Below are positions 30,096-37,466 of a DNA stretch of 64,000 nt, piece by piece; within the stretch, counting starts at the first letter, position 1; every line of letters starts with the position of its first letter. The position numbers and the translations under genes are program-made. The notes under the pieces were generated by a model. That model was not told the DNA's origin, ran no database searches, and worked only from the letters and a program-made list of their open reading frames with translations. Source of the stretch: Lepidodermella squamata (Eukaryota > Animalia > Gastrotricha); assembly GCA_047495785.1 (NCBI GenBank), contig JBLDXI010000033.1, positions 1,736,001 through 1,800,000 of the forward strand, in the 5' to 3' direction.

Positions 30096-31549
30096 TAATA
30101 AGCCTAAAGGCGGAACACGTCAATCATCACAAAACGTTTGCATGATTTCTATGTTTTCAGATGGGTATAATTATAGGCCGATCTACTTGCAGAATTGCGT
30201 GATAATTATTTTTCGAGAAAGAAGAAGTTGCTTCTGCCCAGAGCTCCAACAACCCGGTAATATCGTATCAGCATTCCTGGCCGACAGAACCGTCCAAGTT
30301 CGGGTCGGCGAGCTCTGGGTCAAACCAAACTGCGTATTGTCGAAGAGACAGGATATCTTGGCGTAACTTCTCAGGATATGCGGCGATTTGGTGAAATGGT
30401 GCAAACGGCAAAAAGGCGGTGCCCTTTACAGTGTCAGCTGCCGTAGTTCGCTACTGAGCTCGTAAAATCTACGGCGCCGAGCTGTATTTGTGAGCATCAA
30501 GGAATTCCAGGACTTCGCAAAAAAGTGTCTTGATCCCACGTCTCTCGCAGCCGACAAAGCATGACACAAAGTCGTGTCCGTCAACTTTTGTCCGCTTAAT
30601 TACTTAAGAAAGTCTATCCTCCTTCCGCCTACTACACACTCAGTCCGTCCGAAAGACGCAACAGACGAGGTTCCCAAACAAAACAAACAACCCAAATCTG
30701 ACGATACCCCGACGATACGTCGCCGGCCATCTTGTAACCCTCTAGCAAAAAAAATAAATATATTTTCAAATAATAATGCTGTCGCAAAAATATTGCCAGA
30801 CTTTTACTATTAAATAAATTACGAAATTATCGTTTTTATTAACTTGTCAAAACTACAGTGCGCACAAAAAGTCAGGTCCCATCCTGTTTTCCGCTGCAGC
30901 GAGAGCTACCGCTCAGAAATTAAAATAAATTAAAAAATTGAGAGAAAATATGAATTCCGTTGCGAAATTTGAAAAATAAATGCACAGAAAAACATGACGC
31001 TAAAACCCTCAATCCAGGTTGAGCGGGGAAAGTTGTGAAGTAAGGGATTCTTTGTTTTGGATTATCTCGAAATCTAGGACGGTTGCACCCCAGGATTTCT
31101 CGAATCTACCAGTCGTCAGGTTTCGAAGAATCCGATTTAATAACAGAATACACATGTTACCGTCTTCAATTCTGATATACATACCCTTGAAATAGAGCAC
31201 TTTCTGCAAAAAAACGACATTTTCCACTGGATTTGAACATAATTTTTACTTTCCCTCAGATCCAAGCACGGTAACCACATAGTTTTTTTAGCATGCCTTA
31301 AAGGTTGAAACTCCGCGAGTATTTTTGGTTCATAAAACCCTTGTGTTACCGTTTTCAAAATTTAGGTTCTTAAAGAATTGAATAACGCCTGCAACATCCC
31401 AGCCAAATTGATAAATTAAATTTGAGCCCAATTCAAAAGTTGAAACGGTAACATGTCCTTTTTATTTGCGTGCTTTAAAGAATCGAGATATGAGATTAGT
31501 TTTTCGTAAAGAAATCCATAAGGTTCCGTGTTCTTTTTCTAGATTCACC

Positions 31550-32197
31550 ATGTCTTCGCCCAGCTCTGCCAGTTCTGATCTTCAGGACGAAATTAACTGC
31601 AAAGTCTACGATATTTGCCGGAAACCCGCGCCTTCCTCAATCTTTTCGACACCATATATTTTTTACTTCTTCTCCGACTTCTTCTCGTTTTCTCTGACAT
31701 CGTCCTTGATCATTTTAATGTTCTGCGTCCTCAAGATCACGTCTTTCGCCCTGTATGGTAAATTTTTCAGTCTCATCTTTTGCATCATTCGACTTGTTTT
31801 AATCCTGGCTTTGTTGCTTTATTTTAGTGGATTTTCTTTTCTTCTTGGATTTTTGTTTCTTGCCATTGATTTTCATCCGTTTTTTCTTCATATTTTTACT
31901 CAGTCAAAGCATTATTGCGCTCTGCTGATGAAATTTCCTCCTTCTACGGATAAACCTATCTCGCTTGCCGAATTTGATCGCCTTTCAATAGATTACACGA
32001 ATTCGGAGTTGCAAAAGCTGAGAAATTACGTCATGAGTCCCCAATGCAATCAATGGAACCTCGTTCTGCGCCTTCGCAATGCAACACAGTTCGCATATGC
32101 TATCGATAACAATGAGATGAGGGACTGCAACTTTATGCCCGAAGTCGGTGATGAGAAATCTGAGGCTGACAGCATTAGCTCACTTGATTCGGATTGA
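31550..32197 (+). CDS. Transposon passenger: truncated NEMP/TMEM194-like nuclear-envelope membrane protein (~215 aa)
   Basis: Several hydrophobic segments followed by FPPSTDKPISLAEFDRLSIDYTNSELQKLRNYVMSPQCNQWNLVLRLRNATQFA and an acidic tail, resembling the NEMP1 C-terminal region (LLTEEEY...[34 protein letters not shown]). Confidence 0.75.
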   Translation: MSSPSSASSDLQDEINCKVYDICRKPAPSSIFSTPYIFYFFSDFFSFSLTSSLIILMFCVLKITSFALYGKFFSLIFCIIRLVLILALLLYFSGFSFLLGFLFLAIDFHPFFLHIFTQSKHYCALLMKFPPSTDKPISLAEFDRLSIDYTNSELQKLRNYVMSPQCNQWNLVLRLRNATQFAYAIDNNEMRDCNFMPEVGDEKSEADSISSLDSD

Positions 32198-32379
32198 GAA
32201 CTTATGCCGTAATTTCTCTACTCACAACTCCGAACTAGTCTAATCTATTGCGAGACTTTCAATTAGGCATTTAACTTTGTTCTCTTCATCTCCATTTTTC
32301 ATGTCCCTAATCTGTAATTGTGTAACTACGAAAATGAAATTTTTACTAATTTTCAGTCTTTTGTTTTATAGATATTATT

Positions 32380-33507
32380 ATGTTCACAACTGAGGAGAGA
32401 ATATTTGCTTTCAATAATACCAAAGTTCCCTACCGACAGTTTTGTGAAGCTTGGCGAAATCGGTTTGAAAGTAACCCCCCGAACAGAAAATACCGCCTAC
32501 GTCTTGTCAAGAAATTTAATCAGTCAGGATCGATCCATAACTTGCCGCGATCAGGTAGACCGCGCTCTGCTAGAACGGACGAAAATATTTATCACACTGC
32601 GATTGCGTTATGTGAAGACATTGCTGACCCCGAAGTTAATATTTCAGTTACGAGGCCGCGTGTCGAGGATATTGCGGACCATCTTATGATTTCCAAACAA
32701 AGCGTGCGCAATATCATACGTTTCAACTTGAAATGGCGATGCAAAACTGCATGCAGAGTCCATCAGCTGAATCAACAAGACATTTATCGCCGAGCAAACT
32801 TTTGTAGTGCAGCTCGAAGAATGCTGGAGATAGATCCGAACTTCCTGGATATGATAGTGTGGACCGATGAAGCACTGTTCACGCTCAATGGAACAGTGCG
32901 TACTAGTTACTTGCGCTATTGGGGCGACCCGGCTGATCGAAGGAAATATTACTCAAAGCGCCGTGAGCACAGTGGCGTCATGGTATCCATTGGTTTGTGG
33001 AGATATGGCATTCTGGGTCCATTCTTCTTTGATGACTTGCCACGGCTTGAGCCAAACCGACCCAAGGATAGGATCAACGCGGAAAAATATTGTCAGCTTC
33101 TTAAAGAGCGCTATTTTCCTGAAATTAATAGGCAATTTCCAATGACCGACAGCGAGTTGCGATCTGATGTTTGGTTCCAACTCGACGGCGCGCCCATTCA
33201 CACCGCCACTCAAACAAAGTATCTGCTTAACTTGCATTTTCCGGAGCGCTGGATAGGAAACAAAGGGCCTATGAATTTTCCTCCTTACTCGCCCGATTTA
33301 ACGCCACTGGATAATAGTTATTGGGGCGTTCTTCGTACGCGGGTTTATCGCCGTCGGCCATCTACTCTTCCTCATCTCAAATGGCTCATTGAAGAGGAGT
33401 GTAAAGCCATGTCACTGGACTATATTGAAAAAATTTGCACAGTGGAAATGAAAAGACGAATCAAACTTGTGTGTCAAGAAAACGGAAACTTCATCGAACA
33501 CATTTGA
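32380..33507 (+). CDS. DD41D transposase (375 aa, uninterrupted)
   Basis: N-terminal HTH and RSGRPRS linker; catalytic WTDE, QLDGAPIH and YSPDLTPLD with 41 residues between the second and third Asp. Confidence 0.95.
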   Translation: MFTTEERIFAFNNTKVPYRQFCEAWRNRFESNPPNRKYRLRLVKKFNQSGSIHNLPRSGRPRSARTDENIYHTAIALCEDIADPEVNISVTRPRVEDIADHLMISKQSVRNIIRFNLKWRCKTACRVHQLNQQDIYRRANFCSAARRMLEIDPNFLDMIVWTDEALFTLNGTVRTSYLRYWGDPADRRKYYSKRREHSGVMVSIGLWRYGILGPFFFDDLPRLEPNRPKDRINAEKYCQLLKERYFPEINRQFPMTDSELRSDVWFQLDGAPIHTATQTKYLLNLHFPERWIGNKGPMNFPPYSPDLTPLDNSYWGVLRTRVYRRRPSTLPHLKWLIEEECKAMSLDYIEKICTVEMKRRIKLVCQENGNFIEHI

Positions 33508-33733
33508 CAGTTTATTTTCGTTGACGATAATTTATTTGAATTTTTGTATTTGTATGTTGAGTTACTAGTCAAATATTGTTTTACTGTCTTCCTAGTCAAC
33601 ATGCATGCAATATTAAAATTAAAATAAAATGACTTGTAGCACCAGACTTTTACTATTGAGGCACGAAATTATAGGCAAGATTGTAATGCAACGAATATAT
33701 TTTAGTCAGTGCAGTGATCATGCAGATGAAACC

Positions 33734-34687
33734 TTATCTGCGTCTTCTTGGGACAGTGAAGCGTCCAGTGCCGTCTCTGCTTACTTCTTCCACGAGCTGA
33801 GTAGGCAGCCAGCTCTTAGCACGCTCATACATCCTCTTTCCGAGGCCAATTATGATATACCAGACATCAGATTTCGTAAAGACGAAAATCCATCTAATGA
33901 TAATGCAGATGGTGGATTCTTCCAGCATCAAGCTCTAAAAATATCGAAGTCAGGTTTATTGAGAAAGTCTGTCTTGGGTACTTACGAGAGCCAAACCGAC
34001 AGTCGTGTAATATGTCGCGGCAATTATGAACTCCCCGATGGCACAAAATAATATTTGTAGCAGCAATTCCTCGCAGCCAAGCTTGAGAAATGATTTGCAC
34101 ATCATCCATAGCGCAATTATAATGAGGTAAAAAATCAATTGGCCTTTTTTGAACGATTCTTGCTGATGAGGTAGCATTAGAATTTGGGAGATAGCTACTC
34201 TCCAAAGAGGATATTCCAGAATGAATTCGTTAAACTTTGTCCTGACTTCCAAAAAGCCGGCGAAAAAGTCATTGACCGTGTCTATCGCAATCGATTTGGC
34301 ATCAAATTTAACACCGGCGCAATAGCCCGGAATTTCAGGATAATACGCTGCGTAGACGTCCAGATCTTTCTCATCATAACTTGCATAGCAAGTCTTCCAG
34401 TTCTCGGCTGCGCTGCAATTTTGCGTCTTCCTTCCTTCTCGCTCAGCTTCGCAAACAACAAGCTCGAATGCTAAGCGGCGATAATCAGGAGTCTCATCAC
34501 TTTTGCATTTCGCGTCAGCATTAGAAATCCATTCTTTGAAACATTTTTGCTTTCTCGTTAGGAGCATTTCTTTGAATTTTCTTCCAGAAATGATTCGCAA
34601 TTGGTCAACTTCAAGAGAACTCGTTTTATCGGCAGGGATAACGCCCTGAACTAACATCGGCAGCCAGATTGCAATAAGACGGATCAT
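33734..34687 (-). CDS. Transposon passenger: Brambleberry/GEX1/Kar5-like nuclear membrane fusion protein (2 exons, ~300 aa)
   Basis: Signal peptide; six-Cys domain C-x11-C...RLAFELVVCEAEREGRKTQNC-x8-C-x22-C; C-terminal TM segments. A 51-nt GTAAGT...TTTTAG intron (33935-33985) joins ORF 33734-33931 in frame. Confidence 0.85.
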
Positions 34688-34835
34688 TCCAGCAACTTGC
34701 AAGTAAAATTAATATAATAATTCCTACATCAAAGATACAATCTAGAATCAAAGAAAGTTATTAAGTAAAATTTGAGCTAAAATCTGAATAGAAAAATTAC
34801 ATATGTTGCAAAATGAGCATAGTAAACATGTAATT

Positions 34836-35268
34836 TTAGTCTAGTTTCACCCCCGCACGATCAAAAGTCACTTGCTCGTTGTTAGCAACAAACTCAATTG
34901 CACCTCCTCTGCCCTCCTCGACAGCTACAGGACGGACTCGCCTTTTCAGCGTCTTCTTAATTAGTAATGTGAACAGGATGATTATGACTAAAAACATCAC
35001 CGCCGCCACAGCCGCAAGGCCGACTATTGCTCTATGTACAAAAGAAGATATGACTCTATTATTGTTGACGAAAACAAATATCATACTCCTTGTGGTCAAA
35101 TAATTGCACCGGGGTACTGGCTGACGGATGGCTTTGGGCCTCTGGTTCAGGTTCTTCCGACGTTCCAGCGCTGTGTAGGGATGTGGCTGTGGCTGTAACT
35201 GTGGTAGGTTGCAAGGTCGGTTGGGTTGAGCAGATCGCCCACAAAAGGCAAAGGGGAGATTCATCCAT
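34836..35268 (-). CDS. Transposon passenger: small mucin-like single-pass membrane protein (2 exons, 125 aa)
   Basis: Ser/Thr/Pro-rich N-terminal part, 55-nt GTATGA...CATAG intron (35032-35086), TM AIVGLAAVAAVMFLVIIILFTLLI followed by KKTLKRR. Confidence 0.7.
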
Positions 35269-35855
35269 GATTTTCTATAAAATTCTATTTAGAATGAGGG
35301 TAAGACGATGAGAAGATCTTGTGAGCAAATGTGCAGGAGATTACAGCGTCGAGACTACGGAAATAGCAACTGACGACTGCGGGCGAGTGCGAGAAAGGCT
35401 GAGCAACTGACCTACTATGTACTTCTAAACCGCCTTTGTTTCCCGTTTCCCCCCGTTTCCCCTGGCAACAGACGTCCGTTATTTTAATTTTAATTCATAA
35501 AAATTATTAATTATCAATTTTGACAACATATTTCTAATTATTTTCAAATTTTACCCGCGAATTTCCGGGTGAGCGGGGTGGGACCTGACTTTTTGTGCGC
35601 ACTGTATATTGAAAACACGCGCGCGACTTGGATTTCGAGGAGAAGTTTGGTAGCGAATGAAACGCTTTTTGCCCTGGATCCTTGTTGTGTTGTGCCTAAA
35701 TAACGCTATTACTGCCGTTTATCATAATCAAATTCAGGGTTTGTTACCTTTCTCTCTGGTTATCAACTCATTTCAGTGTTTCACGCGACCAGCCGTTGTG
35801 GTTTTAGAGGTTTTACTGTTTGTTGAGTTTTACAAGTGACTGCTGGAAAATCGAA

Positions 35856-37466
35856 ATGGTAACGTTAAATGGCATCCGAAGCTTTCATCTTATATGTATC
35901 ATTTTTCCAGAGCAAGCAACGCTCCCGTCGCTTTGATAAGAAAAGCGCTCTGAAGTTCCGTCTCACCCCTGGTGGTCAACTGCCAATAGATTTACGCGAT
36001 GGTGACCACGATTCCAACGAGGCATGATTGATCCAAAATTTTCTAGTTGATTACTTATTAACATTGCTATGCCAGGTCATATTGGATGATGAGGCTCGGA
36101 AGGCGGAGCAAGTAAAGTATGGGATTTTCTACGATGATGAATACGACTACCTGCAACATCTCAAATCTTCTGCCGATGTTACCCAAGTCGATATGACCGA
36201 CTTGAAAGTTGGTGCAATCGCTGACAAAAAGAATTGGATATTTCCTTCTGGATTTATGGCTGAAAAGATTGCTCAAATTGAAAACGACGCTGGTAAATAT
36301 ATCAAAATTTTGTTAAAACTATGTTTATTTAGCCTACCTGCAGAATCGATTGATGACAGCGATATCTCTGAAGTTGATCACATGTTGGAAATGGAGGGCG
36401 TTATTGAAGATGGGGAATTAGACGAAGATTTTATCATCAAAGCCAACGGAGGGCAACTTCCGATGCTCGATGACCATGGACTAATAGTCCAGGGTCAACC
36501 GAACAAGTCTGCTGGGCGGACTGCTACGGATTTTTTTGAAGATGACTATGGCAGCTCTGGATCGGATGATGACAATATGGAAGCCTACTTTGATAAGAAC
36601 TGTCAGATCAGCACGGCTCCTCACAGCACTAACCAGGATCGTTCCCTTCTTGATGAACGTTTCGCTAAGATTTTAGAGGGCTACGACGATGACGATATTG
36701 GTGCTCTTGAGGACGAAGTGATTGCCGGTGGCTCTCTGCAACCGGACGATGATCTTTTCAAGCAAGCCGAGGAGGATTTTCAGAAGAGGCGTGTCGTGAA
36801 GACTAAACCTGCTCCACCCTCAACGACGTTACCTGAAAAATCAACAACGTACGTCTAACTCATGAGTTTTCGATTAAATACAAATTCCGATATTTTACAG
36901 TTTTGTTGCTGCAAAAAAGGAATCTTGCAGATATTCCGAAGAAGAGGCTATAACCGAAGAAGAAGAAGAGGAAGAATTTGAGAGAGTGAAAGTTGCCGTG
37001 AAACCTAAACCTACTCAGCTGCTCAACTGCGAATCAATTTTATGTATGCCCATGAGCTTGAGAACGCTGGATAATCATTAATTTTATTTCAGCTTTATCA
37101 TCAAGCTGCATGCCTAGCCACTGTCCAAAAATCATATCTGATAGCGGCAAAAATCGTCAAAAAGTACCTTCTAAATTAGCAAACATTTCCAATGCGCCTG
37201 CTCAAATAGCCGAGGAGTCAAGCTCAGAGTCAAGCGACGAAGAGGATGCTAGTTCGGAGGAAGGTGATACACCAAAGAATCAGCAATTCATTCGCCGAAA
37301 GGGCGAAACTGCCGAGGAAAGGAAACAGAGAAAAGCGGCAGCAAAGCAATTGAAAAAAGAACGCAGAAATCAGAAAAAGGTTCTGAAAGATGTTTTCGGA
37401 AGAGAGAAGGGCGCTGCGGAGCGTCAAATAGCGACTGCTTTAACAGCAGCCGCTCGCCTTGTTTAA
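35856..37466 (+). CDS. LTV1: 40S biogenesis factor LTV1, multi-exon
   Basis: RFDKKSALKFRL; RKAEQVKYGIFYDDEYDYLQHLK; RSLLDERFAK...YDDDDIGAL; C-terminal RRKGETAEERKQRKAAAK...F. Confidence 0.92.

Follow-up and report, generated by a model that had tools for sequence, protein, structure and literature searches.

We have analyzed a 64,000-nucleotide stretch of DNA from the gastrotrich Lepidodermella squamata (contig JBLDXI010000033.1, positions 1,736,001 to 1,800,000), referred to below as the window, with all coordinates given as positions within it (position 1 is its first letter). The gene of interest lies on the minus strand at 33734-34687 and encodes a 300 amino acid membrane protein with a Cys-rich domain. 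We are highly confident that this protein belongs to the Kar5/GEX1/Brambleberry family and that its gene is the cargo of a transposon, a 4,751 bp element bounded by terminal inverted repeats (TIRs) and flanked by a TA target duplication. The overall explanation that we favor, and that we consider somewhat better than an even bet, is that of a transposon-borne short family member that would act as a modulator of the nuclear envelope.

The Cys-domain gene is made up of two exons. Exon 1 (33986..34687, minus strand) begins with an ATG at 34687 and contains 234 codons; it is followed by a phase 0 intron of 51 nt with GT..AG boundaries (33935..33985, minus) and by exon 2 (33734..33934, minus), comprising 66 codons at 33934..33737 and the stop codon at 33736..33734. 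Contigs of three public runs, X1 (DNA), X2 and X3, have been aligned to window positions 30400-36100 and in contigs of both X2 and X3 position 33934 is joined exactly to 33986, with the intron absent. The X2 contig that crosses this splice joint has a depth of 166.6 and extends for 255 nt on the shorter side of it, and the joint (33934|33986) is absent from the DNA run X1. Two further introns of the element are removed in X2, at 35032-35086 (minus) and ∼31448-31542 (plus), the flanking host gene is likewise without one or two introns in this run and poly(A) ends are present on X2 contigs. Because introns are removed from three genes of the element, poly(A) ends are found and a common 5' leader is present, all features that the DNA run X1 does not have, X2 and X3 behave as transcript assemblies and, on the reading of both as RNA, we conclude that the Cys-domain gene is transcribed and that its predicted splicing is correct. 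The gene model of the original prediction, made from the letters of this stretch, included one canonical intron and holds in its coordinates throughout.

The 5' leader is seen on X2 contigs whose 5' ends lie at 34725 (Cys-domain gene, minus) and at 35806 (an LTV1-like host gene, plus); the two share ∼20 extra letters ending in ..TTTGTGTCTA. This leader is present nowhere in the window and both of its junctions sit at an AG that follows a pyrimidine-rich stretch. The extra letters look like the product of spliced-leader trans-splicing; a literature search with the leader sequence returned nothing relevant.

Exon 1 encodes a hydrophobic N-terminal leader (residues 1-19, as judged by Kyte-Doolittle hydropathy), the Cys-rich domain (residues 30-135; 34600..34283), a 56 amino acid spacer and, from residue 179 (34153) onwards, membrane segments 1 and 2. 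Exon 2 supplies the third membrane segment (residues 241-266; 33916..33839) and a basic tail with an RDGxGRF motif (33838..33737), ending at the stop codon. The relatives P0009, P0010 and P0011 also have hydrophobic N-termini. The six predicted luminal cysteines are C49, C61, C79, C91, C100 and C123 (the first encoded at 34543-34541 and the last at 34321-34319, minus), with successive spacings of 12-18-12-9-23, and a C-x4-EGR-x-T-x2-C motif spans C79..C91. Hydrophobic segments are found at residues ∼182-203, 208-236 and 241-266, and helices at 176-200 and 205-226 in an AlphaFold2 (AF2) model of the exon 1 product, which is all-helical and has predicted local distance difference test (pLDDT) scores of 87-97 over residues 30-135. 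In the last 40 residues 10 Lys/Arg stand against 4 Asp/Glu, with RRRR at the very end. By topology prediction the Cys domain would be placed in the lumen of the endoplasmic reticulum (ER) or the perinuclear space and, if the chain makes three membrane passes, the basic tail would be cytoplasmic or nucleoplasmic. A signal peptide, six cysteines at the Brambleberry spacing with an EGR.T motif, a short linker, several transmembrane segments and a basic tail had all been claimed previously for this protein, and each is recovered here.

The evidence for family membership begins with an exhaustive phmmer search against 1.84 billion representative proteins, from which seven matches to the window protein were obtained. 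Five of them, with E values of 1.6e-68 to 2.4e-12, come from ENA metagenome assemblies and are close relatives; a sixth, P0006 (E 3.5e-4), is the "Protein brambleberry" of Nematostella vectensis (A7RG01, UniRef name) and the last is a second long relative, a protein of 400 amino acids with the same build (E 5.3e-4). An exhaustive search was needed, as a word-indexed protein search with exon 1 gave no match. Brambleberry proteins from corals, sea slugs and a fish were used as the comparison set. The Cys spacing of 12-18-12-9-23, adhered to exactly by the window protein and its close relatives, is also that of Brambleberry from Nematostella, Elysia and Labrus, with corals showing 12-18-12-10-23, and the Nematostella counterpart of the core motif is C-x4-SGRKT-x2-C. 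Alignment of the two family profiles using hhalign produced a probability of 97.3% and an E value of 1.9e-11 over residues 6-160, and a tblastn search of the whole window with the Nematostella N-terminus returned a single match, the Cys-domain gene, with an E value of 4e-10. In light of these phmmer, hhalign and tblastn values the homology of the Cys domain to Brambleberry, as judged from sequence comparison, is significant and chance is excluded.

The profile match to the Cys-rich domain by which the original prediction proposed to judge itself is thus present and significant. The structural comparison that it suggested leads to the same family, with the best ESM Atlas fold match of the AF2 model being a plant "protein GAMETE EXPRESSED 1-like" cluster with Pfam Tht1 (template-modelling score of 0.40 over 115 residues, 3.5 Å). 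Other routes were less productive: a PDB sequence search gave chance matches only (E 1.3), an Atlas feature search with the relative P0011 gave sub-threshold rows only, and a scan of JGI metagenome contigs with a narrower Cys-family alignment recovered no relative.

Family members, as defined in the literature (PMC4291462), combine a signal peptide with a Cys-rich domain in which six cysteines are invariant; one or two coiled coils follow, and the C-terminal part contains two to three membrane domains. With the exception of the coiled coil, all of these published features are present in the window protein. Kar5, GEX1 and Brambleberry have in common with it the N-terminal leader, the six-Cys luminal domain with its C-x4-(E/S)GR-x-T-x2-C core, and the two to three C-terminal membrane segments. 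In contrast to these proteins, which are ∼500-590 amino acids long, the window protein has 300 and leaves no room for a luminal coiled coil. The spacer between the sixth cysteine and the first membrane segment is 56 amino acids in the window protein, P0001 and P0011, compared with 104-175 in Brambleberry proteins (about nine to twelve compared), and contains only short, low-confidence helices in the AF2 model. The C-terminal tail is also short, ∼35 amino acids as opposed to >200 in Brambleberry, and unlike the latter it is basic with a conserved RDGxGR[FY] motif of its own. Finally, the window gene is transposon-borne whereas Kar5, GEX1 and Brambleberry genes reside at host loci. The description of the protein as 'shortened' is therefore apt, with a luminal spacer of roughly half the Brambleberry length and no long C-terminal tail, and we regard it as a short, divergent subfamily that has the family-defining domain and not as an orthologue.

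The left end of the transposon (30854..30884) consists of TA (30854-30855) followed by a TIR starting CAGTGCGCAC, and the right end (35576..35606) of the TIR followed by TA (35605-35606). The 31-nt terminal arms are 97% complementary and present nowhere else in the window, where the terminal 26-mer occurs 2 times with 0 occurrences expected. An empty site is found in the DNA run X1, in the form of a contig that joins 30853|35605, so that 4,751 bases are absent and a single TA remains; 15/454 positions of its left flank are different in the window and the site is that of another haplotype or strain. In both X1 and X2 the left end of the element is also found on a different flank, corresponding to a second insertion site, and the depth in X1 is ∼200-220 over the element versus 64-94 over its flanks. 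Taken together, the empty site, the second flank and the raised depth establish that the element is mobile, or recently so, and that it is present in a few identical copies. Lying inside a TIR-bounded, TA-flanked element with an empty-site allele and a second site, the Cys-domain gene is not an ordinary host orthologue, the outcome that would have told against the original prediction. We have also considered a composite of two elements around host genes and rejected it, since there is one transposase and one TIR pair, the empty site is exact and a TIR stands beside the same genes in the metagenome contig L007. One X1 contig of lower depth aligns to 34494-34628 with 7 differences and then skips 548 bases (33945-34494), with 38 other letters between; it represents a copy of the Cys-domain gene, located elsewhere in the X1 genome, that has diverged and carries an internal deletion.

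Tc1/mariner transposons are textbook single-gene elements. The present element shares with them the TA duplication, short TIRs that start with CAGTG and a ∼375 amino acid transposase with a probable N-terminal helix-turn-helix (HTH), but it differs in its size of 4.75 kb and in having four expressed genes, with three conserved membrane-protein passengers flanking the transposase. Cargo-carrying eukaryotic transposons are known in the form of the fungal Starships, and of Mavericks with fusogens. Like these, the element keeps accessory genes beside its mobilization enzyme; Starships and Mavericks, however, are giant and use other enzymes, whereas the element here is a small Tc1/mariner. Its transposase gene (32380..33507, plus strand) is intact, encodes a Tc1/mariner-type protein of 375 amino acids with the probable N-terminal HTH and is colinear with an X2 contig. 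The match to Pfam DDE_3 (E 4.8e-5) scores 23.7 bits, below the cut-off of 28.6, and HTH matches are weak. Three aspartates, D163, D269 and D311, do not vary across three relatives, and we take them to constitute a DD41D triad from our own count against the Mos1 motif. A DD41D signature has been assigned to the rosa group of Tc1/mariner (PMC7325037), and the spacing that we count in the element's transposase matches it, a placement that rests on spacing and not on phylogeny.

The association between passengers and transposase can be followed in a set of metagenome contigs, L001-L007, including those that encode the close relatives of the Cys-domain protein. L003 contains a small membrane gene, a Cys gene and a convergent transposase gene whose product is 59% identical to that of the window, and in L001 this gene order is repeated with a transposase that is 45% identical. 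In L007 a TA and a TIR 90% identical to the window TIR are followed by the small gene and then by the Cys gene, and an N-terminal motif, MDDSPLCLL.G.C, is common to the small genes of the window, L007 and L003. The Cys proteins of the relatives are 27-43% identical to the window protein. In the Cys genes of L003, L004 and L001 the intron is found at the same codon, and exon 2 is homologous in all three with a common RDGxGR[FY] basic tail. Ratios of nonsynonymous to synonymous substitution rates (dN/dS), calculated for the closer copies (L007 versus L004 and L005), are 0.26-0.31. It follows from the conserved layout, the intron position and the low dN/dS that the passenger is old and selected. 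These comparisons show that passengers and transposase have been passed on as a set, under purifying selection, in a lineage spanning several organisms; the Cys gene has long belonged to one transposon clade, where it is under selection, and is not a chance capture. The term 'transposon cargo' used in the earlier description was correct but understated, since the gene has been conserved as part of a transposon lineage and is not a one-off acquisition. The intron is likewise real and conserved within the transposon family. It is located in the membrane region, which does not align significantly with Brambleberry, and its origin, put down originally to capture at the DNA level, can therefore not be read from its position. 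More distantly, 409 metagenomic transposase relatives were confirmed by tblastn, and the passengers are absent from eighty metagenomic loci with transposases that are 26-33% identical, 32 of the 80 having at least 1.5 kb of 3' flank.

Transposases of other types are also found next to these genes. In L004 a 397-residue open reading frame with a weak match to a hAT dimerization domain (1487-2680, minus) takes the place of the mariner transposase, convergent with and downstream of the Cys gene, and in L001 (2397-3368) and L006 (2-784) the pair formed by the small gene and the Cys gene has a MULE-type transposase gene immediately upstream of it. The module of small gene and Cys gene may thus sit beside, or move between, transposon superfamilies.

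Two further passengers are encoded by the element. The first, a NEMP-like gene (31550..32197, plus), has 215 codons' worth of product (215 amino acids) with about three membrane segments and the NEMP C-terminal domain; an upstream non-coding exon ends near 31447, an intron extends over 31448-31542 and a poly(A) end lies near 32349, as seen from a joint and a loose end in X2. The match to Pfam NEMP (PF10225, E 8.6e-9, 35.8 bits with a cut-off of 28.7) covers profile positions 129-239 of 249. The conserved C-terminal domain is common to the passenger gene and to the NEMP (TMEM194) proteins of the inner nuclear membrane but, unlike these, the passenger lacks the N-terminal leader and first membrane segments, with only the C-terminal 45% of the profile represented. 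In X2 contigs 13 bases (GTAAATTTTTCAG) at 31758-31770 are missing from the NEMP-like frame, which shifts the frame and truncates the protein; the gap might reflect an event resembling a micro-intron, a variant copy or an artefact of assembly. The second is a small type-I membrane protein of ∼125 amino acids, encoded at 35268..34839 (minus) by exon 1 (35268..35087) and exon 2 (35031..34839) on either side of a 55-nt intron (35086..35032), with the splice joint 35031|35087 present in X2. Its spliced translation includes a leader, a T/S/P-rich (mucin-like) stretch, one membrane segment and a short tail.

What might such a protein do for a transposon? Fusion by yeast Kar5p depends on every one of its domains, the coils and conserved cysteines among them, and it has been proposed that these cysteines allow Kar5p molecules to contact each other across the lumen (PMC4291462). 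As the Cys domain is kept in the window protein and the coil, which Kar5p needs as well, is gone, binding or modulating is likelier than fusing. The nuclear envelope is the most economical site of action because half of a NEMP protein, from a family of the inner nuclear membrane, travels along. The original prediction had suggested that the protein could be a dominant modulator or a competing fusogen. We tentatively propose the following mechanism, which has perhaps the standing of a working idea. The window protein would be inserted into the membranes of the ER and the nuclear envelope, exposing its Cys domain to the perinuclear lumen and its basic tail to the cytoplasm or nucleoplasm. At this location it would probably bind itself or host Brambleberry via the Cys domain. 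Without a coiled coil it might then modulate the coupling, fusion or re-formation of nuclear envelopes, not being a complete fusogen, and together with its NEMP-like partner could favor the transposon in germline or early embryonic nuclei. A still broader and more doubtful proposal is that a small cut-and-paste transposon lineage has long carried a nuclear-envelope kit, consisting of the coil-less Kar5/Brambleberry-type protein, the NEMP half and the mucin-like protein, with which it would manipulate nuclear membranes in germline or cleavage nuclei for a gain in transmission. Such a gain might come, for example, from access to chromatin, from the mixing of nuclei in a syncytial germline or from drive.

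Several points weigh against the explanation of a Brambleberry-type nuclear-envelope modulator. The AF2 alignment included Brambleberry sequences, so that the fold match is only partly independent of the sequence comparisons. Pfam, including Tht1 (PF04163), provides no family for the Cys-domain protein (E<=1) or for its relatives. Nematostella Brambleberry is likewise without a match to PF04163, however, and the Tht1 model therefore does not cover the animal branch. The membrane halves of the window protein and Brambleberry are not significantly alike (hhalign probability of 2%) and a simple deletion of the coiled coil, with the remainder of the protein colinear, is consequently unproven. That X2 and X3 are transcript assemblies is something that we infer, as their records do not state RNA. 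It is also not obvious why a transposon that moves by cut and paste should need a nuclear-envelope protein. Lastly, the tblastn search with the Nematostella N-terminus revealed no canonical host brambleberry in the window, and the host gene was not sought genome-wide, so that there is no known partner.

The Cys domain might instead have been reused away from the nucleus, with the protein serving a secretory or cell-surface role together with its mucin-like partner, for example in adhesion or in the fusion of cells or vesicles. Like the envelope-type fusogens of other mobile elements it could then aid passage between cells, or from soma to germline. The constant presence of a leader-bearing, T/S/P-rich single-pass protein encoded beside the Cys gene speaks for such a role, as do the loss of the family-defining coiled coil and a membrane half that is not recognizably Brambleberry-like. 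We nonetheless consider it unlikely, given that the element also carries a NEMP-family domain, the mark of an inner-nuclear-membrane protein, that a Tc1/mariner has no capsid or packaging function for a fusogen to serve and that Pfam, PDB sequence and Atlas fold searches revealed no resemblance to known cell-cell fusogens. Selfish drive, whereby a defective Brambleberry/NEMP-like protein would poison the fusion or re-formation of nuclear envelopes in non-carriers and another product would protect carriers, is a good deal less probable again. Brambleberry is described, in work cited in PMC4291462, as a maternal-effect gene acting in early cleavage nuclei, which would suit a drive system, and the element does carry several truncated nuclear-envelope proteins and is polymorphic in its presence; yet we see no sign of toxicity or of a protective partner, and multi-copy transposons at varying sites fit classical toxin-antidote loci poorly. 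Finally, a recent functionless capture (transduplicate), or an ordinary host brambleberry between unrelated transposon ends, is largely refuted and deserves hardly any credence, for although DNA transposons do acquire host fragments and no canonical host brambleberry is seen in the window, the reading frame is intact and correctly spliced, the gene, its intron position and its neighbors recur with 45-59% identical transposases in other organisms, dN/dS is ∼0.3, the empty site is precise and retains one TA, and there is one transposase gene and one pair of ends.

The finding is of interest for several reasons. To our knowledge no conserved eukaryotic factor other than Kar5/GEX1/Brambleberry is known for the fusion of nuclear membranes, and the mechanism of this factor is unsolved; we found no structure for the family in the course of this analysis. 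The window protein represents a naturally minimized, evolutionarily maintained version, with Cys domain and membrane anchor and no coiled coil, and offers a tool for dissecting what the Cys domain does alone. Full-text literature searches returned no paper that links Brambleberry, Kar5 or GEX1 with transposon carriage and no Tc1/mariner with conserved cargo of nuclear-envelope type, so that, in the literature searched, a Brambleberry-like passenger is new for the Tc1/mariner class. Three selected membrane-protein passengers imply a new way for a DNA transposon to profit from host membranes, most plausibly the nuclear envelope. Mutations of GEX1 are already used for haploid induction in plants, and if the protein interferes with nuclear fusion it may be of interest for such work.

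Some minor observations concern the borders between the genes of the element and its surroundings. One X2 contig starts at 32289, between the NEMP-like and transposase genes, with a run of 22 T, which might mark a poly(A) end on the minus strand or be artefactual. At 33558-33560 the transposase transcript contigs, extending to 33558, abut the convergent contigs of the Cys-domain gene, which extend to 33560; the 3' ends of the two mRNAs may overlap and could yield double-stranded RNA. Only ∼200 bases (35606-35806) separate the right end of the element from the 5' end of the LTV1-like host gene downstream of it, and this gene (Pfam LTV, 36028-36858) is still expressed and spliced in X2.
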